Position numbers and translations under genes: made by a program
Source: Zygnema circumcarinatum SAG 698-1b
Lineage: Eukaryota; Plantae; Zygnematophyceae
Direction: 5' to 3'
DNA: 64,000 nt
Assembly (NCBI GenBank): GCA_037447605.1
Contig: CM074809.1
Location: forward strand, 1,478,689-1,542,688
The notes under the pieces: generated by a model
Seen by the model: only the letters and a program-made list of their open reading frames with translations
What the model was told of the DNA's origin: nothing
Database searches by the model: none
In this document: piece after piece, positions 326 through 62,146 of the stretch
Numbering within the stretch: the first letter of the stretch is position 1
How the letters are laid out: every line of letters starts with the position of its first letter

Positions 326-1725
326 CCCTCGAATGAGCTTCTCAAAGCGTTCGGCTTCATTGTCAATGCTATCGATGGTCTTTAGGACTCCAGGTAACAG
401 AGCTAACGCCTTCTCGTTCTCTTCACTCTGAAATGATAGACAAGAGTACTACTGTACTTGTAAGTGCAAAAGTGATCAGGGCCATCATGGGCACAAGCGG
501 AAACCGTAAGTAGTCAGACATGTTGAGGGCACAATACAACAGGAATGCTAGTTTTGGTACTAAGAGACAACTGCCGCGTACCAGATCAAATTGACATCTA
601 CTCAAGACAAAAACTTCGCCTCTTCTTTCTAAAAATACTTTTCAATCTACTCCATCAGAGGAATCACCTTCACTTTCTTGAATATGTCCTCGTACCCAAG
701 CTCCCTGAGTATTACATCCCTTAGTCTGCAGAGTGTCTTCAGTGCAATAAAAGCAAGGATGTCAACAGCATTGAGCAGCCACCGCCATTTTCATCTTTGT
801 CTTATATTCGCATCATATTGTTGTTCGAAAATAAATAAATCCATCCGCAGAGGAAGTAGTGGAAAGCGAAACCAAGCCAGTCATTGCTTTAAGGGTGGGT
901 GGCAACATACGATACAAGTAGGGGGACCGTCATGGCTTTCCGGATCTTTTTCGAAGTCATCTAACATTGAGAGATACCTGTGAGTACACCTTAGTGTGAG
1001 GGATCAACGTCTCTAATATGTCAAGATCATTGCTAACGGGTCCCAACTTACTGCATTTTAACAAGAAGCAACTTTTAATGACATACAATGCTTTGCCGTC
1101 GCTACATTTAGAAAGACTAACGCTAAAAAACAGCAGCTTCATCTGGGCCATCCACCGTCCGTCAACTCCTATTTGCAATTTTTGACAGCAATATTTTGCA
1201 TTAAGAGCTGCCCACCTATCTTCAAACTTCTGAGCCCTTTCCGCAGCATCTGGTACTGTCTCGTCGGCAGCTGCGCGTTTTCTGCCATTAGAGGGTGAAA
1301 AAGATTCATATAAGCTATCGAGGATTTAATGTTTCCATTAAGTCACAAGCTAAAAAATCAGCTGACAGCAGTAAAGAGCTTTGCGCCGATTGCCAGAAAT
1401 GAAGCGGGTGATTTCACATACTGCAACTGTGCACTGGACAATCTACAACTCCGCAAGATGCACTGTTTCTCTTTACGAAAAGCGTTTCGGATTACAAAAA
1501 CTCAATAAAATCCGGCAATGCTCCATCAGCATTCGTATGTTAAATGAAAAATGCCTCGTACTTGAACCCGGGCACGCTTTTCCGAAAAACGTTCAGCCAA
1601 ATCTTCTCTGTTGGTGTCGATTTTGACAAGCTGTCATGTTCCCTTCTGTAGGAAATAGTGCAGGGCTGATAGGAATCGGGTGCCTCCAGCAGAGGGAAGG
1701 GCACGAGGCGCGAAGTTGACTCCAT
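326..1725 (-). CDS. DUF89/ARMT1-like damage-control phosphatase (At2g17340-like), 5' part; 3' exons not found, gene probably continues beyond the window start
   Basis: Phase-consistent GT-AG exons 1725-1562, 1281-1216, 977-911, 736-668, 427-326 translate to MESTSRLVPFPLL...WLNVFRKSVPGFKKRAAADETVPDAAERAQKFEDRYLSMLDDFEKDPESHDGPPTCITLCRLRDVILRELGYEDIFKKVKSEENEKALALL...RFEKLIRG. This is collinear, from recall, with the N-terminus of Arabidopsis At2g17340. Confidence 0.85.
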
Positions 1726-2784
1726 GGCTCTTCCCTTCGCTGCTTGCCTTAGTCCCTTCTCAGCTTCGCGCTCTCCACCGACGAGGCAGGAGCAGGGGCT
1801 CCGCGACTTCTGCAGTCACTGGTCCTTTGCGAGCAGCGACGACGGAAGTGATGATGCTCTTCGATGCCCAATTGCATCCGACTTCAGATTCCAATGTCTT
1901 AACTTTTTGGCCAACTTTCAAAACTTCAGGTTTTCAAGAAAAGTAAAGAGGCGTTTTCAACGTTTCAAAGTTTTCAAGTGTTTGAAAGCTAAGGATAAAA
2001 GTCTCGAGGGAAGTGTAGTTCTTTGTGTGACATAGAAGCACTCAAATTTCAATTTGCTTCCAAAAGCATGCTCCGTTTTCCAAGTGCTTCTCTATTGACG
2101 ACTGAAAGATCTTTAACGGTTTGGCCTTCAGAAAGGCCTCACTTTCAAGTCGTGGTTTGCCAGACCTTGGACACTGTGTTGTATCTTGCTCGTAATCCAA
2201 AGCATGATGTTCGAACCACAGAGAGATGTTAGACAAGAGTTTGGCTATGTTGTCAAAAGCATTGCTTTGGATCATCTCACTGACTGATGGAGATTTCAAT
2301 GGTCACATTGGTCCATGCTCATACATTCATGACATGTTCGATGGTACATGCACCGACAGAATCGAAAGTTCAGACAAGTGAGAGACAAGAAAAACATGTG
2401 CAAGAAAGAGGAGAGAAGAGATGAAATGTAACTACGCTGTTGTTTACAAGCAGCGCTTCCCTCACGATTTTCCAGTCAGGCAACTTTTGCCGACAAATGA
2501 GCAGAATCAACGTGAAGTTCGCACCATTTCCATCGAAAATTTCAGCAAAGCCTCCCAAGAAGGCCACTCATTATTACAATTGAAGCATCCTCCTTAGCCA
2601 GCTATTCATCCATTCCGTCCTGCCTTCTGCTTCATCTTTCTATAAACAAAGCAAACCCGTCAACATCGTAGAGTTCAACCCACCCCCCCCCCCCCCCCTC
2701 TCCTTCCTGAGATTTCCAGTCTGACAACCGCCACAATGTAAACTAAAGCTGAACAACAAACAGACCTCCTACCCCCCCCCCCCT

Positions 2785-5700
2785 CTACCGCCGATCCGTC
2801 TTGCCAATTCCACGTTTTCCAGTGAGTAAATGCTTTGGCCGGACATTGTATATCGTCCGATCTGCTTCTCCTCTCCTGGCGTCCTTATTCCTCTGTTTCA
2901 CTGCTACTTTCCCCATCTTGATTGCCTTCTTCTTCTGCTCAGTGTCGCGGTACCCATCACCTGGCACAGCCACGTCCAAAGGCCTACTCTTCGACCTCGA
3001 CCGCGACCTCAATCTCTTATTGGGACGGCTTTCATCAATGTCCATATTCTCTGCACCTTCCTCCTCCGGTCCTTTCGACCTCTCCCGCTTCCTTCCGCGT
3101 GATAAGGAACGACTTCGAACACGCTCAACGGCTGCCGTTGGATCTATGCCCATACCTGTCAGATGCCGTTCCATGCGCTGAACTGTAAACTGGCGATCGC
3201 GATCGACTTTTCGTGGCATGATCGATTTACTCTCTGCCGTCGATTTCTTCAGACGATGCTCCTCAAGAAGCTTCCTTTTCTTGTGCCTGCACAGAGTTTC
3301 GTCCACAATCGTGATCAGGACAAACACCCTAGTAATCCCATAAAAGGTTGCTTACTACGAGAGCTATACCAGACCAACTTCCATCTCTCTGCAAACTCCG
3401 AGAACTTCAGAAAGTTAACTCAAAAGAGAGGGAGTCGTCACTCTTTTTTCTCTCACCTTATCGCAGTGAGCGCTTCCGCCTCCTCAGGCGCTAACTCTTC
3501 CTCCATATCTTCCTCCCCTCCCTCCTCCTCTCCCATCTCTTCTTCCTCTCTTTCCAACTCCTCCAGCCTCTGCATGATGTCAGAATCAATGAAGTCTGCA
3601 ATATTATGTCCATCGATGATTTCTGGCACAATGTCATTCTTCCAGCTGTCGTCCTCCAGCAGGTAACGCTTCTTCAGGTTAGAGGAGTACACTCCCGCTC
3701 CACCCATCTCCTCCTGCAGCTCCTTCTCCAATTTCTCTGCTCTCTCAACCAAGGGAAGAGGCTGACTTTGTCCGCGCGCTTGCCTGTCTAGAACAGCCTG
3801 CAAGGAGGAAAGCTATGACAATTTTGATTTCTGAAAGAAACAGAATATTGGGCTTGAAGGCTTCCTGGGGTTTGAAGACTTCAACTTATATGAATCAACC
3901 AGGGCGACAAAAATGTGCATATAAGAAGACTGAATGCAGGATTCCAGAATTCTGGAGATCAAGCTTTTGTTTTTTGACGTGTTAGGGGTCCGAGACTCTA
4001 CCTGCGGAATGACAGGTGGCCTCTCCTTATTGTCCCGCTGTCGGGGCATCGCCACATGTATTCGATTTGCAACATCGATCATTTTTTTGCTCTTCATTTT
4101 TACTTCAACTCTTTGCTGCAAGAGTTTCTCGCATGCTGCATTTTTCACCGCGGCCACATTTTCGTCCTTCATTGTTGACATAGTCAACAAGCAATCATCA
4201 CCAGTCAACCCCTCCGTCATCATCAACGTTGACCCACATTTTGCCGCTTCCTTTTTCATCTCCTCCAAAACTGCTCGGTCCTCAATCGGAAGAGTCTCCA
4301 GCGGTTGAATATCAGTTTTGTTGCATGCGATGATAAGTGGTTTGTTTGCAAAAAGGGGCTGCACAACAGAGAAAAACTATTTAGCCTTCTGACTCACGAT
4401 CAATATGTTGTTCTAGTTGGATCGATTACACGTGTCAACTGTGTCACACGTTCATGCCACTATATCGTTCTCCTCCTATCATTTCTCCCATTCCTCTCGG
4501 TGCCCCATTTCGTCTCCCCTTTCACCCTTCCGCCAACCTTCTACTTTTCCCCTCTCTCCTTGATTGCCAGAGCCAACGAGTCCGGACAAGAGTTTAAACG
4601 ATGTTACTCCTCGATTCCGTAGATTCAAAATTATTGCACTCATATTTCTGCTCCCTTTCCCCTTTCCTCCCACCACACCACCAACAAACCCAAACTCTAG
4701 CCTCTCCTATTTTCCCAGTTAAGGACAATATTGTTCCAACCATATCCTCTTCTTGGTTACCTAGGCTCCTTTCTTCTTACGATACTTAAATAGGATGTGG
4801 CAGAGTACATTGAAGCCATAAGACCAAAAGGTCCCATACCCATTTTCATCATACCTTGATACTTTCGAAAAGTCCTGCTTGCTGCTGTATGGAATATCCA
4901 CAGGATCCCGATAAATCGACCACAAAAAGTACTGCACATCGGAGATGAGCAAGTGCTGTGATGCTCAGCATTTCAATTGTATTGCGGTCCTCCAATGGAT
5001 GATCCAGAATTCCCGGAGTATCTATCACCTGGAATTTGTCAAACAAGCACGGAAACATACAACAAGAAAGAAAGAGAGGGTCATTCGATTTGGGCCCTTA
5101 GAGCCTGCAAAGTGAATGTCTTCAGCAGCGAACTAAAGGCCTAGATTCTTGTTTTTTAGTGCATTTAGGACAGGAGGGGAAGGGATGGGGCGAGAGGGCG
5201 CGTAAGAAGGAGGATAACAGATAAAGGGCAAGGGCAGGGCATACGAACATTAAGAGAAAAGGGGGAAAAAAACACGAAAAAAGAAATGACGAATAGAAAA
5301 CGGAGACAAAGGATAGAGATATGAAGGTGAAGAGAACTACAAAGACCAGACAGCGAGAGAGGGCATGAAGGTGATGGGAGGATAGCCTACAAGCTGATGT
5401 AAGGAATGATCACCATCACAACAGTCACCATTATCACTTGCATAGAAGGCGTTCGCTAATCCCAACTCAAAAGTCGAGCATTAAACAAAACCAGACGAAA
5501 CTAAAACCAAACAATTTAGGCAATTTGATAGATTCTAAAGGCTTACTTGCCAGCGGAGATATTTGTAGTCTGTATGCCCGACAAACAGAGACTTCGTAGT
5601 AAATGCATAGGGCTGCACGTCCACATCCGCACGAGTGACCTTGTTGATGAATGAACTTTTTCCAACATTTGGATATCCACAAACGAGAATGGTCCGAGTG

Positions 5701-6624
5701 TTCGGATCAATGGAGGGCAAGCGAGACATATGCTGACGAACCTGCAAAAAAAACGAAAAAAGGCTTAGAAAAAAATAAAATCTGGGAGAAATACATGAGG
5801 GGAGATGGGAAAAGGTTGAAAGGGAAGGAAGAGAAGGGTGGATGGGAGAGGAAAAAGGGAGACAAGGAGACCGTAAGTGATGGGAAAAGGGAGGAAGAGA
5901 ATGACGAGGAGACAGCAGGATAGAATGGAAAGAGGGTTGAGGAAAACAATGAGCACAGAGAAAAGGAAGAAGGGAGAAGCGAGTGGTAAGCGGCGAGAGA
6001 GTTAAGTAAAGAGAGCGTGGGAAAGGGACGGGAGGGCGAGACATGGAAAGCAAAATGAAAATAGAGTGATGAGGTGGGAGAGAAGGGGCAACCCTAAAAG
6101 TCTCCCAGAACCAGCTCGACAACCCTACGACCCACAAATTCAAATAGAAGAAAACAGCATACCTGCTCCAAATAAGCAAGGCTGGGTCCCTGTTTCCGCA
6201 TCAAAGTGCACATCCTTCCGAGCGCTGCCCGCTTTAGCGCTTTGCATCGGTACAAAGAATCTCCATACTTCAGCAGTCGAACGTAATCTTTTGATATTCT
6301 ATCGACCAAGTTTCTCGCAGTATTCACTTGTCCGAGCGCCAGCTTGTAATGATCCTTGTCGTACAGCACGTTCAACAAGTCTCCGTAAAACGGATGCACG
6401 TCATCGAGGCGCGGGAAGTCGTCAATAATGGTGGTCATCTTGTCATGGAAGGTTGATTGCGTGAATTTCACCTTCCGCATATAAAATTGTCGGATGCGGT
6501 TGATTGCTGAACCCTTGTGGATGACAGTTGGGGTTTGGCGCTGCGTCTTGGAGAGAACAATGTCTACAAAATCCTTTGAAGAAGGCACTATTCTAATCTG
6601 CTTAAAATTGTACTGGACCACCAT
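2785..6624 (-). CDS. NOG1: Nucleolar GTP-binding protein 1 (60S biogenesis GTPase), 6 exons
   Basis: Exons 6624-6163, 5741-5547, 5028-4855, 4358-4002, 3797-3457, 3286-2785. Motifs: N-terminal [10 protein letters not shown]...[15 protein letters not shown]1 [12 protein letters not shown]2 [11 protein letters not shown]3 DTPGILD, G4 NKTD, C-terminal [18 protein letters not shown]. Confidence 0.97.
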
Positions 6625-6980
6625 GATGCCCTGAGGAGCTTTCAGAGTTTAAGGTTTCTAGGGAGTTTATTATTTCAAAGTTGATCACAGGTTTCAGAGG
6701 TTTAAGATACTCAGGAGATAGTGCGATTTGGAGGCCTAACCCTAAATCTCAACCTGCTTTAGCACAGTGGGAGAAGCAAATGGTGGTTTCGTTTCCTCTC
6801 TCTCCAGCTCTCCCTACATTCCCTTCTCCCTCCTCCCTCCCTCCCTCTCGCTCCTGGGTGCTCTGCTTCCCTCGCCCCTCCCTCACCTCCCCTCCCTCTC
6901 GCCTCCACTCTCTCTCCCTCTCTCCCTCTGTCCCCCCACTCCCACGCCGCCTCCCCTCCCCCCTCCTCCAGTACGCAGCC

Positions 6981-7077
6981 AAACCCTAATCGCCTGCGCT
7001 CTTTGGATTTGGAAGCGCCACTTGACGGGCAGAAAGAAACATTTTCAGCCGGGTCCGTTTGTGCGTCGGCAGGCCCA
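6981..7077. promoter_or_regulatory. Telo-box (AAACCCTAA, 6981-6989) plus site II (GGCCCA, 7072-7077) upstream of NOG1
   Basis: Both motifs are seen directly, about 360-450 bp upstream of the NOG1 ATG. This motif pair is established in plant ribosome-biogenesis gene promoters. Confidence 0.55.
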
Positions 7078-7426
7078 AAATAAAATTCATTGCGTGCATC
7101 TCACGCCTTTGCGCCCAATCGGACGGCTGAAATCAGCCGAGAGAGGCCGAAACAAATCCAACTCCGCAGACCTCTGGCATTTAAAACGTTTTGAATCGCT
7201 TTTTTTGTTTTCGGGCAGGGCGGACCCCGCCGCCACCACACTGCTGCTTCGGCCGCCATTGCGGCGCTCCACGTGCGGCTATATGTGCAGAAAACGTTGC
7301 GCAGTTTCACAGGTACATGAACAAGACAGTAACTTTAATTGTACCTTAACACTAACTCTCGCATAGACATCGCTTATAATGAACCATCCTCGAAGAGCCG
7401 CTTTGCCTCCGAAAGAGCGCTGCCAG

Positions 7427-7856
7427 TAGGGTTGGGGGCACGGGGCACGGGCATGCCCGGGGGGGGGGCATGCCCCCCATTTTTGACCGTCCGTGCCCGG
7501 GGCACGCCTCCAAAAATTTTCCCCATATATTTCGTGCCCCCCCGTGCCCCCTGTCACGTGACGCTTACCTCGTACGACCAGGCCCGGGCCGGTGACGATT
7601 GTTGTGTTGAGTACTGTCCGTACTTTTCATATTTTCCCGTACATGTGTACCTTTATCCGTACGTTTAGTACATTCATCTGTACTTTCTGTACCTTCATTC
7701 GTACCGTTTTTAAAATAGTATATTCTTTTTGGGGCCGATTTGAATTGCTCAATGCAGTCACGTCACGGGGCACGAAAAAGGGGCATGCCCCCCCCCCTTG
7801 GGGGGGGGCACGTGCCCCTGGGCACGGGTCGGAGGGGGACCGTGCCCCCAACCCTA
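7427..7856. mobile_element. Non-autonomous hAT-type DNA transposon (MITE), 430 bp
   Basis: Perfect 17-bp TIRs TAGGGTTGGGGGCACGG (7427-7443) and CCGTGCCCCCAACCCTA (7840-7856); identical 8-bp TSD GCTGCCAG (7419-7426 and 7857-7864); subterminal GGGCACG repeats in both orientations; no transposase ORF. Confidence 0.92.
7611..7706. repeat. GTAC-core tandem array inside the MITE (about 21-bp units with two GTAC each)
   Basis: GTAC at 7611, 7620, 7639, 7647, 7659, 7668, 7680, 7689, 7701 (plus 7572). Units such as CCGTACATGTGTACCTTTAT / CCGTACGTTTAGTACATTCAT / CTGTACTTTCTGTACCTTCAT. Confidence 0.9.
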
Positions 7857-7914
7857 GCTGCCAGGTGTCGCGCGGGCCTGGGCTGGCGGAGGGAGCTTGA
7901 GGGAGGCGGCAGCC

Positions 7915-10900
7915 ATGGCGGAAGCGTGCCTGCGAGCTCCGGAGAGGCTTCCCTTTGGCTCCCTTTACAGCGCTCAAGAGCGGGGCAGAGTGCGCGGTTC
8001 GGTGAGCCACTGCCTTGAGTGTGATGTGCTCTACTGTGAGGGCAGGGAGGGCAGGAGCAGGTGCAGAGGCTGCAGTAGTTCTTCCCTGCTGGGCCACTTG
8101 TATGGCTTTTGTTTCTCTGTGTGAGCTTCAGGGTGAAGAATCAAGAGCTCGGAGATGTTAGGCGAGGCCAGGGGATTGAGTTTGGAGAATTGGAAGCTGC
8201 TGGGAATTGGGTGGCTTCAGCCGTTACTCAAATAATTTTGCTTTTAAGCCGAAAATATAGAATTAATTCACTAACGAATTGCTTCAGAATGCAGCAGTGG
8301 TCCGAGCCTTGTGCCCGTTTGAGGGTTCAGGGTTCCAATTCTCAGGAATTGAGGAGAGTATTTTGCTTGCGTCATTTGAGGGCGTCCTTTAGTTGCAACT
8401 GGTAAAATTGATAAGTTTTACATCGATGAATTTCCAAAGCAATGAATTATTGGCCTCGTTTTCTTGAAAGAATGACCTTTACCTGTCCTGCTCGTGTCAC
8501 TTCCTTCAGGGGCACTGGCAAGTTAAGCCCTTGAAACGGAACGTCGTAGTCTCCAGCATTAAGCACAGCGCAAGCCCACCTTTGTACTCCACTGTAAGGA
8601 TGAGCTAGGAGGTGATTCTTCCTTTCCTGGGGCTGGAATCTGACGTTTCTCGCTTGTTGCCGACGCATTATGTGCATTTCTGGAGTAGCAAAAGGAGGCT
8701 CCTTTGATTCTACTGTCTGTATAAATGAGCTGAATTCCATTGCTCCTTTTCCGGTGCTTGTGTATTTTCTATTGTGATTTTTGAGTGAGGCTTTATTTTG
8801 AGGGACGGTAAGGAACCTCACTTTTTGTCTGGGAATTCTATTCAGGATGCTCTTGAGCCCCATATGAGCAAAAGGGCTGTGGAGGTTCATTATGAGAAAC
8901 ATCACAAGGGGTACGCAGATAAACTTAATGACCAATTAGAAGGGAGTAGTTCACTTCAGCAACTCACTTTGGAGGAGCTTGTGAAACACGCTTATAATCA
9001 TGGCAATCCTTTGCCGTGCTTCAACAACGCCAGTCAAGTGAGTATTGGCCCCTTAATCATTGTAATGTACATGTCGCGTTGGTTAGCTTGTCGTGGTGCA
9101 GATCGATGCAGCGTCTGAGTGTTGAGCAGGAAGGGGTTTCCACTGGCCAGACTTTACGCTTGATTATACTACTTCTATTTTTTTACTACCAAGTTTCATG
9201 GTCATAATTAAATTCTTGAAGTTGTCAAAACTTGTCCTTTAAACATGTTTTTGCACGGTGAGACTTTTTATGAAATTATGATTTTCGCTCTTGACTGTGA
9301 TTTCAAAATGGACCCTGAAAGTGGGAGTTTAGGAACATATATTTTCGCTTTTCTTTTATTTGGGGACTTTGATAATTGCTGTTGTATGTTTAGCATAGTC
9401 TTCCTATCTCACTTTGGACATGAATTACCCTGAAGGCGAGTGGCAGGGCAGTAGAGGCTGATAGAGAGAAGGCCCTGCACTCTTGCAGGTGTGGAACCAT
9501 GACTTCTTCTGGCAATCCATGGAGCCTGGAGGAGGAGGTAGACCGGAAGGGGAATTGCTCTCCCTTATTGAGCGCGATTTTGGATCGTTTGAGAATCTCA
9601 TAAGTGACTTTAAAAAGGCAGCATCGTCGCAATTCGGAGCAGGCTGGACATGGCTATCGAGTGAGTGCTGCATTGGATGGTGAAATGTGCTCTGAGGTGA
9701 AAATTCTGGAAATGGGCTAGTAGTGGTTTCAGGTTGGAAGGGTTGCAAACGCCTGTGATGGGTGAGCCTCTGATTTGCGCTTCTGTGATATGTGCCTTTC
9801 CCTCCAGTTTTATCTGCAGCTGGGTATTTCTGGAAACCCTGAACTCTCTCTTCCATTTGCTCTACTGTATCATGCTTCGCTGATACGGCAGAATTAGAAA
9901 ATGGTGAATGCTTCTCATTGCTCCCTGAACTAGTACCAATTTTCAATGCGTTGTCAGCTTTTACTGATTTGAGCGATGGCACATGTTCAATGCGTGGAGA
10001 CCAGTCAAACCAACAGATGTCGTCCCGGACTACTTCTATCGAGCCCCCCGCGTGTTGGCGGGCCGACGTGAGTGCATCTCACTCCCCTTTGCATCGATTT
10101 GGGCTTTTTGGGGCTCAAAAAATCTTGAAATTGCTTAACCGGGAAGCTTGCAGAAGTTGTGGACTAGTAAAGCATGTACCTGTGGCGGCTGTTTGGTGAT
10201 TAGTTCCGATGAAGGTCAAACAAAGGAATATAGGAGAGTCAAGCATAAGGGCAGAAATCGACACGAGGAAGTTCAATGCAGGATCAGTTTTCCAGAGGTA
10301 GTAGGCCGAAGTGGCCGCTCGTTCTAAGTTCCATGAGTTGAGACGATGGGAGATGGAGCGGAGTGATAGTTATGAATGAGTTGGAGCATCTCAAACGCAT
10401 CCTTCTCTGTCTGTCCAAACATAAATGGAACTTGTTGCATTATCAGTAGACTTGCCGCTTGAACTCAGTCTGGAAGCTGATGGAAAGAAGATGTGGGGGT
10501 GTTGACAGCGGATGAAAGGGTGAAAATAGGACGCCTGGTGGTGGAGAATACGCCAAATGCCATCAATCCTCTTATATGGGGCCACTTGGTATGATGCCCT
10601 TTGTCGTTAAACATGGCTGAGGACGAATAAGGACATGCATGTTTGTTGCTGTTAGAATGCTGCTGCAAAACCCAACTATAGGGCCCTTTGGCTTTATAAA
10701 ATGTTGCCGTTTTTGCTTTAATTCTTCGTACCGTTTCCTTTTTGTAAGTTTGTTTACCTGACTAAGACCTGCGTGGAAAGCATAGATTCGGGTAGACTGA
10801 GGTACTTACCATGTGAAAATTCTGTGCGGGACATGTTTTGGTTTCTTATGCTGGACCTCTGGTGATGGGGATACAGCCTCTTCTCACAATCGATGTGTGG

Positions 10901-12091
10901 GAGGTGAGCTTCGCCCAACTTCTAGTGGCCATTTTCAAATGGGGAGGTTCTTTTGAAGTTTCTCCATGTTGTTTATGGCGACAATGCTTGGTCCATGAGC
11001 CGCTTGAATGCCTAAATAGGAATTGTCGCAGAAATAGGCAATGTTTTATATTATGAAGTAGGCGAAAGGCTTGTTTTTTAAGGATTGAAGGTCAGGAATG
11101 GCAAGCCGGAAGAACAACAGCAATCTGACTGCTGGTTAGGCAGCTGAGAGGTTAAGAAGCTAACTGTCGACTTAATTTCCTTGCTGCCTCTTCTGGTGCA
11201 TGTGCGGCGAACGAATTCATTGCAGCATGCATATTACCTCGACCACCTGGTATGAGTGCTCATCCTTCTCAAATGAAACATGCCTACATGTTAGATTTGA
11301 TGAATAAGACTTTAGAATTTGGCTGAACAGCTATCGTAGGTATATGGTTGGGGTGAGCGAGACGGAGAATGTGTTATGTTCTTTGCTCCGTCGATTTAAT
11401 GTAACACAATTGGAAATCAAGGAGGGGTATCTCAGGCATCTCAAATTTAAAGGGGCGTTGCCCAGAAAAAGGTAGTTAGAATGGATTGGGGAAATTATGC
11501 TCCTTTGCCTTCTTCGTTTTCTAATGATTCATGAAAATGAATGGATCATCATTTCTTGTGAGCCCGTGAGTACGTTGAGGCAAGTTAGTGCAGTGGTGTG
11601 CTAGAAAGGGCTTGGAATAAGCGTTACGTCATGCGGTCCTCCATAGTTGTGCTGTATACAGCCAATGCTTCAACTTCTCCGATATTTGGAGACACTGTAA
11701 GGCTTTGATGGAGTTACATGTGTGTCTTTTGAGCGCATCCCAACTTCCAACTTTATATGTGGTCGTACGGTTGCAGAATGGACGAACTGTGTACATTGAT
11801 AAGTTCCTGGAGAGCCTTGTGTCGTGGAAAGCAGCATCGGCAAGGTTGCAAAGAGCAAAGAATTTTATATCGATGGAGGAGCAAGTATACGAAGACGAGG
11901 ATGATGGAATGACAGATGCGGAGTGGTTGGCAGTTCATGTAAACGACAGGGCGGCGAAGAGAAAGTCAGAAGAGCAGGAGCAGGCTGAGGCGGAGAAGGT
12001 GGCTGCGGAGAGAGCAAAGAGTAAGAAGAACGCGGTTGCCTCAAAGGGCTACGCCATGTACGACGAGGAGGACGAAGGGGACGAGGAGTAG
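7915..12091 (+). CDS. FSD: Plastid-type iron superoxide dismutase (FSD3/FSD2-like) with a charged C-terminal extension, 8 exons
   Basis: Exons 7915-8001, 8510-8593, 8846-9037, 9489-9660, about 10509-10588, 10877-10903, 11226-11249, 11777-12091. Metal-ligand motifs [23 protein letters not shown] and DVWEHAYY. The N-terminus is Arg/Ser-rich like a transit peptide. Confidence 0.93.
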
Positions 12092-13480
12092 CTTAGTCGA
12101 GTACATCACCCTGTAAAATCCCCAGTTCGTTTAACGAAGAATTTTTTTCAATAAAGCGTTTCTACTCGTTCAATCTTTTCCATTTACATGAGTGCACGTG
12201 ATGATTAGTGAGGAAACTTCTAGCTTAAAAGTCCTGACAGAAACATCGTGATCGGTATTTTGACGTTCGGTTCGAAGCAAAGAGTTCCTGCGTGGCTGCT
12301 TCAGTTAAGCTTTCTTTTGCACTATGGAAACGCTTGCTTGAAAACGGCATACGCAACATTCTTTGCACTTGTAGAATGGCTGCTCCTAATGTCTAAATCT
12401 AACATCACAAGGGAATGTCGGTAGCATTCGTGGCCCATAGTCAATTGCCTGGCAACTTGCCACATTCACACGAATCGTCAATGTTATCTTTCGATATGCG
12501 CTTCAACCACCTGTCTTTACGAGAGCTGATGAAAAAGGAGTCTATTTCAGTCTCATCTAGTTTCTCGACATTCCACCTTTTCCTCAGATCCCCCATTTCC
12601 TTTCTTCATTTCTAAGTGGGCCCCCAAGTATTGTGTCAGTCATTACAACCGCTCCACCATATGCATGCGCAGCCATGACCCCATGACCCCACGACCCCAT
12701 CCATGGCGAGCTCCACTTTCACATGTCGCGGAAACGGACCCTCGCCTCCGCCCCGTCCCCTTCCGGCTCACTCCACTCGTCCGTACGGTCTTGTCCTGCG
12801 CGTGTCGCGATTCGAACCCGCGCCGCGCGGTCGGCGCGGAGGCCGCCAGCCAACCGCTTGCAACCGCCGGCCTTGCAACCTCTCCGGCTCGGCGCGCAGC
12901 GGCCCCGCTCCAGCGCTTGCAGGCCCGCGCCCTGCGAGATGAGGCAGCTCCACTCCGCGCAAAAGTGTGATAGTTTGAGATATTTTGGGGATATTTGTAG
13001 AGTTTTTCTTTCTCAAACGTTAGTTGAATCGAGGGACCAGAGGGCTTTAGAGTATGGTATAAGATTCTGCAAATGCAGCAGAGGGCTCCCAGGGAGGAGG
13101 ATGCCGTTGAATTTTCTTGTTTTGGAAATAGGTTTTTAGGTGAAATAATGCAGTGGCAGCTGTACAGTTCGTATTCATCCTTTCGTGCTTTTCGAATCGC
13201 AGGCGCTTTTTTTTTGGGAGGCAATGTACATTATACACCAGTGAAGTGCTTAATTGCGAATGCTAGAACCTATGGGCACCTCACCAACCATTGCATGTAG
13301 ATTTACAGGCTGAGTGACTTTCGATCTGTACATTAGCTTTCGCCTCCAATTATTTCCATCGGCGACAGTGACAGAGAATTTGTGGAAACTGGCGCGAGTC
13401 GCTCTTCGCAAGGGCGTTTCCCTTGATCAGATAGCTGCTCTGTGCATCCACCTCCTCCCCCTCTTCTTGCCTTTGGCCTC

Positions 13481-22968: not shown

Positions 22969-23108
22969 GCCACGTGGCGGCCAACTTTTGCGCGCGCGCC
23001 TCCCATTGGCCCGCCGAGGCATCAAGGGCCGCCACGTGGCCTCGGCGCGCTGCGGCCTCTTCAGCCCTGGACAGAGGCGCGCCGCGGCCGTACGGTTAGT
23101 CCGTACGG
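22969..23108. promoter_or_regulatory. Two perfect G-box palindromes (GCCACGTGGC) and two CCGTACGG palindromes upstream of the LRR gene
   Basis: GCCACGTGGC at 22969 and 23031; CCGTACGG at 23088 and 23101; the ATG is at 22842 on the minus strand. Confidence 0.55.
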
Positions 23109-23513
23109 TCTGCAGGCGCGGTTCGTACGACCGGCGCAAGCGAACCGCAGATCGCGGCGGTTCCCACCGCGGTGAGTTCGGTGACCGCGGGCGGCTGCCA
23201 GGTGACGATCGCTTATTGGTTGGCGTAAGAGCGAGGGGCAAATCCGGGGATCTTTTCCAGCTGACCGTTTTTAAAGTCGGCATTATGGCGCGCGCCACGC
23301 GGCGCCGCGAGCGGTTTTTCCGCTCTGCCCGGCGGGCAGCGAACATTTTCCAGCGGGGCTGGCTTGCGGGCGCCGCGCGTAATTGGTTGGCGGAGGTCGG
23401 ACGGCGTCAGGGCTCGAGCTCGCACATGCGGCAGCTGGCCGCGGAGCACCCTTTAATGGCGGGGATTTACTGGTCGCGGCGGGATCGGGCTCCGCTTTCC
23501 TGAACTGCATCTC

Positions 23514-42131: not shown

Positions 42132-42164
42132 GTACAGTACTGTACAGTATGGTACGTACTGTAC
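42132..42164. repeat. Dense GTAC cluster including the 14-bp palindrome GTACAGTACTGTAC
   Basis: GTAC at 42132, 42137, 42142, 42152, 42156, 42161. Confidence 0.85.
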
Positions 42165-46948: not shown

Positions 46949-49900
46949 TTACTGCATATCTTCTGCCAAACAGTTAAAAGCGGTATCTAACTTGGCCCGC
47001 ACATGCTTGTGGAGAAACTGGCGAGCACTTCTCAAATGTTCCAAACCGGGCTCCGCCTGTTGAAGCGCCTCGAGTGTCCAGCCCTCCGTCCCTGCTCCCC
47101 CCCGCAATTGCTCCACCAAGAAGCGCGCAAGCAGAGGCAGCGCTGTGCTCCAAACCGCCAGCCCCGGATGGACCCTCAGACAGACCTCCGCCAGAGAGCT
47201 CGCCAGACCATATTGCCGCACAACAGTGAGCTCCGCCACAGCGCAGGGGAGGGCGAGTGCAAATAGCGGCCCGGCCTCCGCCCCCTGCTCCTCTACTCTC
47301 CGGCCTGTGATATGGGCTTGAGGGTGAGATTGAGATTGGGCTGCAAGGTGCTCTTGGCGCTGCCTCACCAAGGGCCCTAAAGCATGCAGCACGGCAAGCA
47401 GTAGATCAACATGTTCCGTCTCTGCAGCCAACATTGGCAGGACCCCGCTAGCCAATACCAGCAGCACCACCTCTCGGTCGACCACAGTAACATCCTTCGC
47501 GTCTGATAAAGGAGCATCACCACACGACGAATCATTCTTCATAGCATCTTGTAGCCACCTGATTGCGGAAGAGTGAAGCTTCCGATAGGGCAGGAGGAGG
47601 GCAACTTTAGCTGCCAATGCACGTTTGCACTGGATACGCTCGAGGACGTCCTGTGCCTCTCCCTCTGTCAATAGCGCGAGATCTGAGGACAAGTGAGGTG
47701 CTGCTGCATCTAACGCTGCCATTGCTCGCAGGACCTGTTTGCCCTCTCCCAGAAGCAGACCCGGCAGCAGCATCGCCCAGCATCGGTGGAGGGGGTGAAG
47801 GGGCCATCTCTCCTCCCCATCACCTCCAAGAGCACCCCATCCATCTCCCCACTCGTCATTGTGAGCCCTTTCACTCCCTTCTTCGCCTCCTTGGCTTCTC
47901 CCGTGCAGGACCTCTCCCCATATGTCTAAGAGGTTCAGCAGCGCCGCTGTATGCTCTGCAGACGTTGCCGTACTGTGCAGGCGAACAAACAAAGCTTCTG
48001 CTGCTACAGTGGATGCTACATCCTGCGCTACAAGTTCGATGTCTGGCCAGAGAGGCACAACTGCTTCCGCTGACCTCATAAGCAACAAAGCAGCAGGTCC
48101 AATGTGAGCATCCACCTCATCCACACTAGCCATGTCTGCGACTTCCGGAGCCCACCTTCCCCACTTTCCCCCTCCATCTCTCGCCCTTGACAACCTCCTA
48201 TTCGGCGTCCACCGGTCCTGCTTTATCCCTCTGATCTCCTCCAGGTCTGGGGCGATAATCTCCAGCAGCTGAAGCAACTGAATACGTGATATTCGTTTCC
48301 TTTCCACATCTGCAGCAGCTTGGCACAACCGTCGCCAGAGGCTGCTCCGAAGGGTCCGCAAGAGCCGCAAATATGCAGGAGGATGCTGTGAGCTACTCTC
48401 ATCTTTCAAGGATGTCACAGCCCCCTCCACTGCTTGCAACCCTTCGCTGTTATCTGTTGCGAGGGCTCTGTCAGATACAGCCGCATAGAGAGCATGAAGA
48501 TCAGTCGGGAGGGGTTCATCAACTGCAGCAGGCAAGGGGGGCTTTTCTTCTGGTTGAAGTGAAGTTTGGCGTACAGACCCTGAAAGGACTTCACTGTCTG
48601 ATAGTCTTTCTTCACTCTCTGTCTTCACAGTAGGCACTAACTTCCCTGCTCCTGTTGAGCCTTTTACACTTCCATCCACAGCCCCTGATGAATTGCTTAT
48701 TCGAACCACACCCAGTTTGCCACCCCCTCGTCCTTTACGCTTTGCCAAGGACACACTGCTTAACCGACTTCGACCGTCTACTGAGCTTGTAGCATGGCTA
48801 AGAGTAGGCTTGCTCGTTTCTGGTGAAGTAGCCACAGGAGTTAATTGACGACTCCTGCTCGTCTCTGCCGGAGGAGGGATTGCCGGGTTTGAAAGCGGCT
48901 TCCACGGTCCATACACAGTCTCCATGAAGTTCAAGATGGATAGCAGAGAGCACCCATTTGCGATCATTGCTTCCATAGTGGCCGCCCCTACCTTTACCGA
49001 CTCTGCTCCGTTATCCCGAAGAGGGTCCACTGCTTCCATGGCTGCCCGTGCCTGCGAAGGAGAGATACGACCTCCCTCGAGGAGACTTCGACAAGCTCGC
49101 AAGGAGGCCATGGCTTCCACAAGCCGAGCTTTATCCTCTTCGGCTGAATTGGGGCCCAAGAGCTGCATAGCATCCTCAACAACCGCTTCCCAAAGTAGCA
49201 AAGGAGGGTCTTCTGCTGAGATGCTGTCCTTCACCACAACCTGCAAAAACTCTTTCAAATCTGTTGCTTTTAATTTGCACAAATACCTTCGGCATGCGCC
49301 ATAGCCGTCAAAGGAACTGCTTTGACGTTCTTGCAAGGAGCTGCTCCACATGGACCGTACAAGGGAGAGGTAGATGGCCTCCTGCGAGGGCAGCAGGGAC
49401 GCTTCGTTGTGTCCTAACTCTGCCAGATGTGCCGCCAACCCTGCGAGGGTGTCTACATTGGCGGGAGTGAGATGTGCCTCTATCTCCCCCAGTGCTTCCG
49501 AACACTGCGACTCGTGCCACTGCACGCACCGCAGAAAGTCGAGCCTTGGGGCCGCTTCACTAAGGCGGAGACATTCATGTTCATACGTTTTAAGGGCTGC
49601 GAGCCGCTCTGCTAGAGAACTTTCAGCAGGGAAGAGGGCAGTTGGAAGCTGCTCCTTCAAGTTGAGTTCTTGGTGGGTTTTTTGCAGAGAGCGGTATCCT
49701 TGAGAGAGGAGGGAGAAGCAGTACGCAAGGCGAGCATGGCGGGAGCCGCTGAGTTGGGGGAGGACGGACTTTTGAAGGAGCTTTACAAACTGAAGAGGAT
49801 TTGCTAGGAGGGTGTCCTCTTGGCTTGATACTTCTGCCTCTACCTCATCCGTCTGCCAGTCACTCAGTAGTAACGCTTCCACATGCGCCAAATGGACCTG

Positions 49901-52900
49901 TTGCCAAAACCACCGACGCTTTACTTAGCATCTGCTAACGTTAATCTGCAGCAACAACATGTTTTTCTACTGTAAAAAGGCGGACTCTCGTTCATACCTG
50001 CAGAGAGTCGACTCCATAATGCTCTGCTAAGGACAGTGCATGCGATAGCATGTCGGGGACGCCTAAATGGTGCGACCCCACCAGAGAGAGTATCATGGTT
50101 TCCATGTAGGGCTTGTCCCGGGCTGCAAAGCGGTGGGGGTCTGCTTCAGGTAGCACCTCTTGTAGCAGGCGAGCATCATCCGACGCACGAAGCTTTGTTT
50201 CTGCTTGCCGAGCCTTCTCCACCCACTCTGCTGCACCTTCTGCTGCCCCCATAGGTACATCTCTCAGAATGTACTCACTCTTTCACAGAACAGGGTTTAA
50301 ACTAACGTATTAACAGATTAAGAAAAGGAGTAAAGAACTTACCCTGATCCAAAACTCCCTCCTCAGACGCCCTTGCAAGCTGCTGTGCAAGCTCCAATGG
50401 AGATGCTTGCAGTAGCTGCTGAGCTTGCCATGGCTGAATACCTGTCGGCTGCAGCAGTAAGGCCTGCACTGCACAATGGTAAAGGCTCATGGCCAAGGCT
50501 CTACGGGAGGCACTGTGTTCCTTTCTCCTTTCCATCTCCATCTCCAGCAGTGCTGCTGCCTCCCCTGCATCTGCTGCATGCAGGGCATATCCAAGCCCCA
50601 CGGAGTCTCCATCCCTGCCCTCCCCATAACGTAAACCTTCACCCATGGCTGCCTTCGCCATATCAATAAGCAGTCTGTCTGCAGGTGCCACTTGAAAGCT
50701 TGCTAACGTATGGAGAACTACAGAAGCAATCTGCCCACGCATCACTTCAGATGCTGGGTTCGTATCTTCCGGGGGGTAGCTTGCCAGCAGCCATGGCAGA
50801 TGCAGGCAAGCAAAAACTAGAAGCTCCTTCGGAGCTGTATGCAAAGACCATTTCCGTTCCTTATCCACGTCTCCACTGACCTGCGACAAAGCCACCTGCC
50901 CTATCTCCAACCTATCCTCAACCTCATCTCCTCCTCCCAAATGCTTGATGCCCCCACAAATTGCTGCCAAAAGCTGTTCCTCATCCTTCAAAGTGGGTAC
51001 CGCCACAGCCGCTACAAGCCCAAGCTCCCCACAGCGCTCTGCTGTGTCCGTACCGCTCCATGCTCGCAGAAGGGGAAGAAGAGACTCTTCGTCGCAGTGG
51101 GCGAGTGCGAATCCGAGCAGCTTTGCCCTTATGCTAAGGGGAAGGCCGGCCTCCTCAGGGCCCCTTCCCAGAGCTGCACAAAGGTCCCAAATGTCGCCAT
51201 GGCGGCGCTGCAGAAGTTGGAGGCAAAGGGTTCGGGCAAGTTCTGTTTCGCCTTGGCCAGCTGCATGCCGTGCAACTGCTGCTAAAACTGCGGAGTCATT
51301 TTCAAGGCCTATTTGTCGGGCAAGTTTGAGGATGGCTGGGGGGTCAAGGAATGCAGTGGGTGAGGCAGTGAGGACATGTGCGATGAGGGCCATAGGGCTG
51401 CCCATTTGGCGAACTTGCAGAGGGAGAAGCTCTACCCCCATGTTGGGCAGAGTATCTACGATTGCAGAGACAAGTTCTGCCTCTTGGCAGGCAATTGCAC
51501 TGTCAGGGATGAGTGCGAGGCACTGTCGAGCTCGTTCCACCTGCAGCATTTGCATGTCAGACGTGTTAAACATTGAAAACAGATACCATGTCGTTTCCCC
51601 ACTTGACAGCAAACCCTTCTGCAGACTTTTTCTACCAGCAGCACTGACCACGACGGAGCTCTCACATCTGCAGAAGTGTGACTCGTTGATGAGTAAAACC
51701 AATGGCGTGCAGCCTCTATCACAAGTTGCTCGGACTCCTCCCCTGCAAGCTGCTTCAGAGGCCCTCCCGCTGCTTCAAAGCAGCCTGCATGCAGCAGCCC
51801 CCTGCAGTACTCTGCAAGCAACTGCTCCCGCAACAGGAACGGAAATCCCTCTGTCTGAAGGGAGCAGAGTGCCCCCCACAGCTGCCCCCACTCTCCCTCT
51901 GAGGGAGGGGGTTGCCGTCTGCTGAACCCTGCAAGCAGCCTTCGTAGCAGATCCTTGGCAGCCGCCACATCTCTCCGAGCAGCCAACTGCAGAAAAAATG
52001 CCATGGGCTGGGCCACCTGCAGGATGACTCCTGTACGGCATTCAGATAACTGATGGAGGAATAGAATCCAAAACCAGAGACGTAGGATAGCATCAAAGTG
52101 ACCACTTACATGATACTTAGACAAGAGCTTTGCTGCTCGAAGATGTCCAGATGCAATGATGACTCTCTGATGAATATCACTATGAGTCTCCATTGCCTCC
52201 TCCCCTGCTGCTGCTCCGGTCAGTTGGGCTTCCATCGGAAGTTGTTGAGCCCTTCGATGCAATGCAGAACGTAGCCCCCTTGGCGAACCCCTATTTTCTC
52301 CAGGGGCACTCGCAGCAGTGCGTGTGAGAGTTAGCAGCACAGCAAGCAGCTCATCCACCTGCTTCCAATGGTCTACAGAGGGGAATGCATAGCAGCAGCG
52401 GAGCCCAATCTCCATCACATCCTCTGCGTTCATTCCGAGCCTGTCCCAACCCTGCCCTTTCAGCACAGCGGTGCACACTTCAAGCTTACCCTCCCTCGCC
52501 CGCTCGTCCAACCACCGAGAGAGGAGAGCTGAGCTGCTCCTCTCCGTGCTCGAACTCGGCAGTTTGCGAGACCACCGAAGAAGTAATGGAAGGGCACGTT
52601 CGTGAAGGCGCTCTCCCACATCCTCCGCATTCGCCCCCTCTAGAAGGAGCTCAAACCGAGAGTAGACACCCATACCTTGCCAACGTTGCCAGGTGAGATT
52701 AGGGGCACCTCCATACACAGCTGCGTGCATATCCGCCATGTCTTCAAGGAGGGGTGTGAGTGAGACCATCCCTCGCTGCACCCCCAAATCGAGTAACCCC
52801 ACACTGTGCTCCAACCGCCCTGTTTGCTCCTCTATGACTGCAGCCCTCCGTCGATACCACTCTTCCACTTCAGAGGGAGAGGGCCATAGCAATCCTTGCC

Positions 52901-55900
52901 CGAGACGGACGAGCTCTTCAGTGCAAACTTGCAGAGGGACTGCCTCCCGTCTCTCTGCCTCCCTCGGAGAAGCGGAAATGGGGCCCTTGCTTCCTCTGCC
53001 TGCAGCTATGGCTTCTAGAGTAGTAGTGCTCTCTACCCAGTCCGTTCGCCTTACAGTAGCAAGGGATGGGGGGGTTGGGCCGGGGAGAAGAGTTTGAAAG
53101 CTCTTAGGAGGGAGGAGTTCTGGCAGAGAGTCCAAAAGCGTGAGGAGACAAGGGGCCAAACTATGGGTGTGCCGCCTTAGAAGCAGGTCTAAGGCAGCAC
53201 ATTTGCCTGCCTGCGCCATGAGAAGTGCAATTGCCAACAGACTTTCGTCGCGAAAGTTGTAGTAGTCGGCAGGGACGAATCTGACAGTCGACATGCACAG
53301 GCAGGAGTGTCTGAGAGAGGGAAACATGCCCAAGTCGAGCTGTGACAGCCATAGAATTCAATCAAAACTGAAAGCGACCAAGTTCTTTACATGAATTTCC
53401 GAATGTCAGCCACTGCATGCCTTTTGGCAGAATCACCTGCCCATGGAGACCGCCATGTATGTCTCCAGTCGCTCCCGATATTGCAGCAGCCGAAGCCTTT
53501 GCCTGCGAAACCACCATAGCCGTTCTTCCGCCTCCTCCCCCATCAACCCCTCTCTGATCAGCGCTATATCGCTGCTCCCTTGCTCTATGAACTGCTGAGT
53601 TTCCTGCAGCCCATAGTGTAGCAAAGCAGCCGCAGCTTCAGCAGTTCGAGGTCCATGACCAAGACACTCTTCCAGCAACCACCCTAAGTCGTGCACCCTC
53701 ATAAGGTTGTCGCGGATGCTATGTCTCCCGCAGTCGGATAGACGCCACCTTTCCTTGTATACAACATCTGAATCGAGACCATAAGCGGCAGCTAAGGTCA
53801 GAGCCGCCCCATACTCCTGCTCAGCCAAATGGATTTTCATCATCTCTTCGGGGCTGCGTTGAACGAGTGACACAAGCCTCCACCCGTGAAATGCAGATTC
53901 ATCATCTGGGGAGTAATCATCACTTCCTTCCCTACGGCTACCAGAGGCGTAAGCCGTGCCTAGCAGCCATGGCAGCAGGCTTGTAGATTCACTAGGGGAA
54001 GCAGTAATACCTTCGTTTTCCTGCCCACCCTGTGCACACAGTTGCGTCTCCAACACAAGCAAGCAGCCATTGCCAGCCCAACATAGACGGGGCTCAGCCT
54101 CAAAGAGCTCTGGGCGTGATCCTAACAAACTGAACCCTTCAGGAACAGTCTGCAGGGCCACTTGCCCCCCCTTCAGTGCTACTGCCAAAGCCTCCTCTCC
54201 CCACCATGCCACATCCACTGCTTCCTCTACCTTCAGAGACACTCCCTCCTCCGGCCCTTTCCAGGGAACTGCATGGAAGCTCCAAGCATCGGAGTTTTGC
54301 AGCTGCCAAACATGCACTTTCCCAAGTTCATCTACTACAGCCAAGCCTTGGCCTCCTGGGGAAAACCTGCTCACTGGAGGAGACCCGTCCAGCAGAACAT
54401 CCTTACCAAGTGTGCGGTTTGGCCCGCTTATTGCACTGACGCAAAGAAGGTTACATTTGAACTTGGGGCCATCCTCCAGCTGCCACAGTGAGATAAATGG
54501 CGGCTCTGTCTCCGACCAAAGGCAGTTCACAAGGTTTTGTCTCAGTGGGAAGCAGATGTACTTGAAATGAAATCATCCGGCATCACATCATAAAACTCTT
54601 TTAACTCTCTACGATACATTCCTTCCTTTTTGTGATATCGTACCGATTGTAGGAGAAAATAAAAATTTTGGCGCGTAACATGAAGAAATGTAGGGAATGA
54701 AATGTGGATTGAGACGCGTTGCTAGTCTAAACAGTGGCTCTCATACCTGCAGATGCTGTGGGGCCCACCACCGCGAGCAGGGCCTTTTGGGGGTGAAACG
54801 CAACACAAGACACAGGTCTTCTATGCTGCCATCTGAGCGAGACTGAAGCCTCTTTGCTCGCAGAGTCTCCAATTGGTAGCTTGAATAGGGTAGCATTCTT
54901 GCTCACCAGAAGCACTTCATGGCTGCGCACAACCAATGCGCCGGTCATGCCGTAATTCATATGATATGTTAGAAACCTTCAGATTAGCCATTGATCATTC
55001 AAAAGATACAATAGTCAGCTTCATCGATGCCCTGCAATCACTTAGTTGAGACAACACGAAAGCAAAATTCTGCAACTTGATCAAAAGTCGCTTCGCCAAG
55101 AGGTAGTGATGAAGAATGAAAGACCCTGTGATAAGGGACAGAAGTGATGGGGCTAAACTCCCAACGAAGTTGTACATTACAGAGCTAGCCAACTGGGCAC
55201 AAAAAGTAATGTTTCGTCTCGTTTTCCACGACCATTTTCCTCCCTTTTGCTAGGAATATTCTCTTAACTTTATAGAAAAGAAATTGGTTTAAAATTTCGA
55301 CAACCATTTTTTCAAGTATGTCTACAGACATTACCTAAGACCACAACGTTATCCTCATATTGTTGCCATCATTTGTCAGACATAGAGCTTTAAGCACTAC
55401 ATCCATAGGGACTTGTTGTTGCTGAACTTCCTAAGTAACCCCTTTCTCCTGCTCCATTATCGTCACTATTGACAATAAGGCCATGATTCTAATGCTAGAG
55501 CAAGTTCGACCGGACTGATTATTCCATAATTCCCTCAATCTTGTGGTTGGCTTCTCTCACCTTCTAACCGAACTTGTCCCTGGTCTTTTCCGAATAGCAA
55601 GGCCTACCACCACCCCTTCTTTGCGCCATTCTCGGCGGGGAATCGTTTGTATCAGTTGTGCATTCTTGTCTAAAACATGCACCGCTCCTTTCGCAGGATT
55701 GAACACGGCCAATAGGCTTCCATCTTCGCTCCATGTAGCGTGCTGCAAGGCTGCCCTTGACCCCTCTGCCTGCGGCTCTGCCACACGCCGTATGACCTCA
55801 GTTAACAGGATGGACTTTACTGAGCGAACAAGTGCCTGCTCTTCAACCTTCGACAGTTTCACTTGCTTGACATCTGACTAGTCAGTACTCTGTTTGAAAT

Positions 55901-61638: not shown

Positions 61639-62146
61639 GGCGTCCAGACACCAACCCAGCTGCCACGTCTGCCAAAGACCACCTGATCCGAGGTCTGTGC
61701 AGCTTCTAGGTAGGCATTCTGAAGAGTGCCTGAAACCTCTTTAACCAGGGAAGTAGCCGATGTCCCTAACGAGCTCTGTCGGAGCAGCAGAGGGGGGGCC
61801 GGGTCTCGGCTGGCGCGATTGCATGGGCCTGCAAGGACCGACGTCGAATTGTTACCAATCGAACGGCTGGCGGACGGCCGTCGGATTGGTGACGGACGGC
61901 CAGACGTACGGATGGTCGGATGTACATAAGGACGGACGGACGGACGCACTGACTTACACTGGCATGTACGGTCAGTTTGAAAGCGATGTTGAACGGAAGC
62001 CTAAACGGAGCACATGTAAATGGAGTTTTTATCTCGCTTTGGATTAGACTGGGACATGTCAGACTTAACAAAATCTTGCGGAAGGAAAAGCTACTGAAGA
62101 AGTACTCCGCTGCAAGCGTATCGCGATGTCACCGGAGTACTCGGAC

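Follow-up and report, generated by a model that had tools for sequence, protein, structure and literature searches.

A hAT-type MITE with a phased GTAC array at the apparent transcript start of an iron superoxide dismutase gene in Zygnema circumcarinatum

Described systems and the Zygnema locus

Transposons that carry regulatory sequence are known from plants: rice mPing and Brassica MITEs (miniature inverted-repeat transposable elements) with E2F sites both spread binding sites for transcription factors. In carrot, the MITE DcTourist_15 spreads LHY/RVE sites, and DAP-seq (DNA affinity purification sequencing) together with insertion polymorphism showed effects on binding and expression (PMC13102513). 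GTAC, the core of the sites of SBP-domain factors, has copper-linked readers in CRR1, SPL7 and PpSBP2 (PMC3617394, PMC8963501, PMC10796333). Here we describe a 64,000-nucleotide stretch of the genome of Zygnema circumcarinatum SAG 698-1b (contig CM074809.1, positions 1,478,689 to 1,542,688; hereafter the window, whose own numbering is used throughout), in which a MITE of hAT type with a dense GTAC array lies directly before the gene of an iron superoxide dismutase (FeSOD). A first-pass annotation of the window had proposed that the element placed this gene, and any gene near other copies, under copper or SPL control. Binding-site-spreading MITEs and promoters derived from transposable elements are already known; what is distinctive here is a phased array of many sites followed by a TATA-like box and an apparent start site.

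Copper-response elements (CuREs) are the closest described systems on the side of the binding sites. In moss, PpSBP2 acts on the FeSOD gene at GTACT (PMC3617394). In Arabidopsis, only FSD1 is described as a target of SPL7, and FSD2 and FSD3 (PAP9 and PAP4) are located at chloroplast nucleoids (PMC8963501). SBP genes number one to three in each streptophyte alga listed (PMC10796333). The Zygnema locus resembles the CuREs of Chlamydomonas (CRR1 at CYC6 and CPX1), Arabidopsis (SPL7 at FSD1 and miR398) and moss (PpSBP2) in its multiple GTAC cores, their promoter-proximal position and the presence of an FeSOD gene. The known CuREs, however, are few sites in native promoters, whereas here the array is borne by a transposon, GTAC is over-represented in the window generally, and the dismutase is not clearly of FSD1 type.

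On the side of the carrier, the likeness to carrot DcTourist_15 consists in a family of small non-autonomous DNA transposons that brings ready-made cis-elements to the promoters in which it lands and can thereby give one set of sites to many genes; the differences are that the sites here are of GTAC/CCGTAC (SBP) type in a phased array of nine, that the carrier is a hAT element in the genome of an alga, and that the element apparently also supplies the start site. With hAT MITEs such as rice nDart and Ds-like elements of maize the Zygnema element shares an 8-bp target-site duplication (TSD), a terminal inverted repeat (TIR) beginning TAGGG, a non-coding body, subterminal repeats at both ends and insertion near the 5' end of a gene; a central module of GTAC array and TATA-like stretch is unusual for elements of the hAT superfamily. 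As in other promoters and 5' untranslated regions (5'UTRs) derived from transposable elements, the RNA appears to begin in the element and to continue into the first exon of the host gene, but here the start is bracketed (to about 7705-7790) from contigs of one or two runs. Literature searches found no transposon-borne array of GTAC, SBP or CuRE sites.

The element and its GTAC array

The element is 430 bp long (7427-7856, plus strand) and ends in a pair of 17-nt TIRs (7427-7443 on the plus strand, 7840-7856 on the minus strand) that are 100% complementary to each other and are directly abutted by two copies of the 8-bp GCTGCCAG (7419-7426 and 7857-7864), the TSD length that characterizes hAT elements. 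The TAGGG with which the TIR starts fits a YARNG-type hAT end, and the open reading frames (ORFs) that cross the element are spurious only. From the 8-bp duplication, the TAGGG TIR and the non-coding body it is identified as a hAT-type MITE, and the array enclosed by these ends was thus delivered by such an element, as the first-pass annotation had it. The right end of the MITE lies 58 bp before the FeSOD ATG at 7915. Within the 64-kb window, blastn found no further copy of the MITE or of the array, and no transposase gene was found.

The MITE has two arms and a centre. Its left subterminal region (7437-7548) is rich in GGGGCACG/CGTGCCCC, with GGCACG at 7437, 7444 and 7501, CGTGCC at 7492, 7533 and 7543, and tandem periods of 7 and 10 according to Tandem Repeats Finder; the right one (7769-7846) has the same motifs (GGCACG at 7769, 7807 and 7821; CGTGCC at 7811 and 7841) together with a C10/G9 hairpin (7779-7819). 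These two arms (7437-7543 and 7769-7841) hold 11 of the window's 37 GGCACG/CGTGCC sites, the centre of the MITE none, and the motif pair fills both arms and forms part of the TIR. The central module (7602-7756, plus strand), comprising the GTAC array and an A/T-rich stretch, is delimited by loose contig ends at 7601 and 7757 and by a deletion joint from 7566 to 7751.

This arrangement bears on an alternative that the first-pass annotation itself had named as fatal to its proposal, namely that the GTAC repeats are subterminal sites for the transposase; put more widely, they would serve transposition by binding transposase or a host factor for excision or integration. Most copies of the family retain the array, and hAT elements such as Ac/Ds do carry many short repeated motifs that bind transposase; such repeats, however, are subterminal and stand at both ends. 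The GTAC array is central and lies to one side only, whereas the pattern of both ends is that of GGGGCACG/CGTGCCCC, which extends into the TIR; these, rather than GTAC, are the likely transposase-binding sites on the evidence of their placement. Moreover, subfamilies that share the arms diverge at 7601 and 7757, which suggests that the arms are the part required for mobility. A role of the GTAC repeats in transposition is therefore very improbable.

Ten GTAC cores lie within the MITE, starting at 7572, 7611, 7620, 7639, 7647, 7659, 7668, 7680, 7689 and 7701 and thus extending over 7572-7704. The first, a TCGTACG in the left half (7572-7575), is isolated; the other nine fall within 94 bp (7611-7704) and form the densest cluster of the window, where 0.26 would be expected per 94 bp at the window's own rate (176 GTAC) and where no 94-bp stretch held more than 4 when 64 kb were simulated 200 times with a first-order Markov model. 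The annotation's count of ten cores, nine of them within 94 bp and fewer than one by chance, thus holds, as does its distance to the gene, since the array starts 304 bp and ends 211 bp upstream of the ATG. Start to start, the cores are spaced by 39, 9, 19, 8, 12, 9, 12, 9 and 12 bp. The alternation of 12 and 9 spans 7647-7701, and Tandem Repeats Finder reports a period of 21 with 2.8 copies and 75% matches at 7647-7704; the array as a whole consists of some five repeats, 20-21 bp in length, that all begin with (T/C)C(C/T)GTAC. The alternation and the unit of about 21 bp had been noticed correctly, but were assigned to the distal part of the array, whereas the phased half is the one proximal to the gene. 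The extended forms that had been reported are also present: three cores, those at 7620, 7639 and 7659, read CCGTAC, and two, at 7572 and 7701, read TCGTAC. CGTAC is found five times among the ten cores, and the GTACT/AGTAC form at four sites.

The array belongs to the family and not to this locus. Two DNA runs from different studies (X4 and X5) and two RNA runs (X20 and X7) were aligned to positions 6400-12200 at 80% likeness; all are Logan assembled contigs with growth conditions unstated, and contig depth in them does not rank expression. The summed word depth over 7370-7951 is 3332-4452 in X4 (single copy, 38.7) and 6186-7919 in X5 (single copy, 68.5), which puts the MITE at about 85-115 times single copy, and at positions 7645, 7688 and 7718 of the module the depth is 27-100 times single copy; with word depth, about 30-110 times single copy over the two runs, taken as a rough guide rather than a copy count, the family has tens to about a hundred copies. 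Among the 246 contigs placed from X4, those with foreign flanks stop at 7425/7427 and 7856/7858. Only three variants of the central module reach 10% of depth or more, 7645 G>T, 7688 T>C and 7718 G>T, and at all three most other copies carry the non-local letter (depths 1172-6859). No GTAC core is touched by variation at this level among the other copies, and 7688 T>C converts TCTGTAC to an additional CCGTAC, which gives the family consensus four CCGTAC against the three found here. Multi-copy depth and unvaried cores among the other copies thus show the array to be a feature of the MITE family; it came ready-made and was not built at the FeSOD locus. Other genes, too, could receive it in this way.

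Contigs of both DNA and RNA diverge from the local sequence at 7601 and 7757, where loose ends mark other subfamilies, and deletion derivatives with joints from 7566 to 7751 and from 7468 to 7833 are present elsewhere in the genome, in X4 as in X5 with the depth of a single copy. The shared arms, the divergence at 7601/7757 and the deletion joints together indicate that the MITE is modular and its centre exchangeable. The first of the two derivatives is without the whole GTAC module, and the second retains little beyond the ends. An exact scan of metagenomes for the 17-bp TIR returned 19 loci with one match each, at which blastn likeness ended at the seed; these were rejected as chance matches.

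The FeSOD transcript and its leader

One RNA contig joins the MITE to the gene. It is 242 nt long (X20 record 3, 7761-8002, depth 128.5), matches with 0 mismatches and bridges the junction of MITE and flank (7856|7857); the feature that it defines, a 5'UTR of at least 154 nt, 96 nt of it from the MITE, with the first coding exon, extends over 7761-8001 on the plus strand. X20 has a depth of 0 at 6982-7369 and of 5.09 at 7564-7757, and most of the latter is explained by a contig from another copy of the element (record 2, 7459-7601, depth 21.8); an intron contig of the same run has a depth of 3.7 and internal exons have 544. The depth of X7 at 6982-7369 is 2-3. Given a junction contig at 128.5 and almost no RNA upstream of the element or over the array, we consider it likely that the FeSOD mRNA starts inside the MITE, downstream of the array; the start is most likely to be found between about 7705 and 7790, and loose ends at 7757 and 7790 mark another transcript that shares 7757-7790. 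The promoter position which the first-pass annotation had ascribed to the array from its distance to the ATG is supported to the extent that the RNA contigs put the array immediately upstream of the apparent mRNA start in the MITE.

Between array and contig end lies an A/T-rich, TATA-like stretch (7707-7725, plus strand; 36-54 bp upstream of 7761) that is a candidate core promoter as read from its letters. Another possible core promoter, TATAAT at 7375-7380, lies upstream of the MITE and in the empty site would sit about 105 bp before the ATG; we infer that the insertion of the MITE probably split this old core promoter from the FeSOD gene.

The same TATAAT is central to an alternative in which the start in the MITE is an artefact of assembly, the true start lies at a native promoter upstream of 7427, and the MITE is contained in a long 5'UTR. 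Contigs do break at repeated words, the end at 7761 coincides with a predictable branch of the assembly graph, and some RNA of X7 lies over the array. A long leader of this kind is difficult to reconcile with X20, in which the zero depth at 6982-7369 and the virtual absence of RNA at 7602-7756 contrast with the depth of the junction contig, or with the 2-3 of X7 at 6982-7369; furthermore, at 7688 and 7718 the array contigs of X7 have the letters of the family and not those of the local copy. We regard the artefact as unlikely.

The account that we favour, and in which we place moderate confidence, is that of a MITE-derived promoter and 5'UTR with candidate SBP sites at the FeSOD gene, the array being a possible landing pad of a general rather than a copper-specific kind. 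A hAT-type MITE would have inserted into the promoter region shared by a divergent NOG1-type gene and the FeSOD gene, bringing a three-part structure of two GGGGCACG arms and a central module; this module presents the nine GTAC cores head to tail, several of them CCGTAC and at a repeat of about 21 bp or two helical turns, followed by the TATA-like stretch. The FeSOD mRNA would begin past both, still within the MITE, which would thereby supply the promoter's proximal part together with some 100 nt of a 5'UTR that is very rich in G+C and has an upstream ATG out of frame. The array is a plausible landing pad for SBP factors generally and may help the module to act as a portable promoter. The exact start site, the use of the TATA-like stretch and binding by an SBP factor are all elements that we infer, and a role of the array for any SBP factor is, in our estimate, less likely than not.

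Several points weigh against this account. X7 has RNA over the array at a depth of about 35-43; its array contigs bear the family letters and probably come from other MITE copies, but local read-through across the array could also produce such RNA. A true 5' end is beyond what assembled contigs can reveal, and coverage of 5' ends is low; the end at 7761 in particular is where a branch of the k=31 graph is expected, with another transcript sharing 7757-7790. Native elements upstream could drive the gene, the start merely falling in the only A/T-rich patch available. An allele with the empty site (joint from 7426 to 7865) was not seen in the two DNA studies. Finally, the copies are near-identical because they are young, which makes the conservation of the cores uninformative on selection.

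In the principal competitor of a MITE-derived promoter the array is a neutral passenger, an internal 21-bp tandem repeat without regulatory role. The element would have landed there through the preference of hAT elements for open 5' regions, the gene would tolerate the insertion, and native upstream elements would have moved the start into the A/T-rich patch. The tandem structure of period 21 fits this, as does the near-identity across the family, which points to recent amplification rather than selection; derivatives that lost the array (7566 to 7751; 7468 to 7833) exist, and the native gene starts placed in the window have ordinary GTAC density. It accounts less readily for the extreme density of nine cores in 94 bp in which GTAC is always kept while the spacers vary, for CCGTAC set head to tail at two-turn spacing, for the position of the array just before the RNA start and for the recurrence of GTAC clusters in CpG-rich islands. 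A passenger without function is a real possibility, though short of an even chance.

The leader that the MITE would contribute contains an upstream ATG (7785-7787, plus strand, within the ORF 7740-8018) whose frame differs from that of the main ATG (offset 1), and the C10/G9 hairpin at 7779-7819. The reading frame of the upstream ATG overlaps the main ATG. The leader folds with -98 kcal/mol, mostly an effect of composition since z against shuffled sequences is only -1.7. Upstream ATG and hairpin would be expected to lower translation of FeSOD. A search for known RNA families over 7000-8200 yielded nothing above threshold; its hits fell on the G/C hairpin, the best of them scoring 26.9 bits where the gathering score is 37, and were discounted.

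Possible readers of the array and the surroundings of the gene

The version of the SBP reading that the first-pass annotation had advanced is that of a CuRE cassette through which an SBP factor of SPL7/CRR1 type puts the FeSOD gene, and genes beside other copies, under copper control. The ten GTAC cores with their three CCGTAC (four in the family consensus) speak for it, and the four GTACT/AGTAC sites have the form reported for repression of the moss FeSOD gene by PpSBP2 (PMC3617394); the array stands directly upstream of the apparent RNA start, and FeSOD is the classic copper-regulated target in Arabidopsis, where FSD1 is regulated via SPL7 (PMC8963501). Nevertheless, no site fully matches the consensus TNCGTACAA as quoted in PMC10796333, the best agreeing at 7 of 9 positions; no tetramer of the window is more over-represented than GTAC, which argues against specificity for copper; the enzyme has a long C-terminal tail as in FSD2/FSD3 (PAP9/PAP4) with mixed exon-wise matches; and a copper regulon built on about a hundred copies would be implausibly large unless the majority were inert. 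A copper-specific switch is less likely than a general SBP landing pad, and we think it quite improbable. The widest claim, that the module with its phased SBP sites, TATA-like box and start site is a self-contained portable promoter which in about a hundred copies pulls genes, the plastid FeSOD gene included, into an SBP regulon that may respond to copper, would likewise be improbable.

GTAC is not confined to the MITE, as the first-pass annotation had cautioned. With 176 occurrences against 104 (1.69x) it ranks first among the over-represented tetramers there, and smaller clusters were located at 23090, 36441, 42132, 62102 and 62586, those at 23.1, 42.1-42.9 and 62.1-62.7 kb in CpG-rich stretches. 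GTAC was considered as a general promoter mark, an idea that the window bears out only weakly: in 500-bp steps there is a weak correlation between GTAC and the observed/expected ratio of CpG (rho 0.17, p 0.065), and GTAC density is ordinary at the gene starts that could be placed (NOG1, PDH-E1 alpha and the native flank of the FeSOD gene).

Three of these clusters have features of their own. At 42132-42164 there are six GTAC in 33 bp, almost back to back and outside any MITE, in a CpG-rich island of 63-74% G+C located 2 kb upstream of an ORF resembling UDP-glucuronate epimerase (Pfam Epimerase, 6e-44). At 62102-62378 a satellite of (GGAC)n type has a GTAC every 44-56 bp, which accounts for 8 of the window's GTAC, and an observed/expected CpG ratio of 1.44. 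At 23090-23128 an ORF of 388 codons without a Pfam match contains, in a stretch rich in CpG, three sites of CGTACG type, of which two have the form CCGTACGG and are separated by 13 bp; the stretch may be a further promoter island and not coding sequence.

The gene downstream of the MITE is an FeSOD gene, as annotated: Pfam places it in the Fe/Mn-SOD family by Sod_Fe_N (2.1e-12) and Sod_Fe_C (1.2e-09), matches in the PDB agree, and the gene (7915-12091, plus strand) has nine coding exons with 347 codons and a stop (7915-8001, 8510-8593, 8846-9037, 9489-9660, 10005-10067, 10509-10587, 10876-10901, 11224-11248 and 11776-12091; 1044 nt in sum). All eight introns are GT..AG and are supported by spliced contigs in X20 and X7, which also establishes that both runs are RNA. 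Exons 3, 4, 7 and 8 contain the four metal ligands, and the protein ends in an acidic tail of roughly 70 residues that aligns weakly with the tail of FSD2. Intron 2 has a minor alternative donor in X7 (joint from 8609 to 8844, GT..AG) at about one tenth of the depth of the main joint. The caveat that the protein looks FSD3-like and not FSD1-like was borne out by exon 3, for which PAP4/FSD3 is the best match (1e-20) and the FSD1-like cowpea enzyme 1unf follows at 1.2e-11, but not by exon 4, for which 1unf (1.3e-25) and FSD2 (1.9e-24) come ahead of PAP4 (2.4e-18); going by these exon-wise matches, the enzyme cannot be assigned to any single angiosperm type.

On the other side of the shared promoter region lies the divergent neighbour, a gene for a nucleolar GTPase of NOG1 type, whose first coding exon extends over 6094-6624 on the minus strand (Pfam NOG1_N, 3.9e-52) with its ATG at 6624 and whose RNA contigs extend to 6796-6814. 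In both RNA runs there are contigs that match rightwards from 6780 and continue on the other side into 158-255 unrelated letters; the 5' leader of the NOG1-type gene may be alternatively spliced here. The adjoining sequence at 6820-6934 is CT-rich, of low complexity and similar to proline/serine-coding sequence; it was masked as a repeat in the alignment, and the DNA contigs are gapped there. Farther away, on the minus strand at 46949-54530, very long open exons (of 980, 466, 625 and 365 codons) match Sec39 weakly and look like one large gene of NAG/Sec39 type.

Read modestly, the locus is one at which an essential plastid antioxidant gene appears to have had its proximal promoter and 5'UTR replaced by a MITE and yet to have escaped silencing. 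If the module proves to be a working promoter read by SBP factors, it would constitute a natural experiment on the spread of an entire regulatory unit by a transposon, in a lineage whose SBP genes are few; the roughly one hundred insertion sites would then be available for the study of regulatory rewiring driven by transposable elements, and the oldest plant-specific family of metal-sensing transcription factors would have a regulon built by a transposon.

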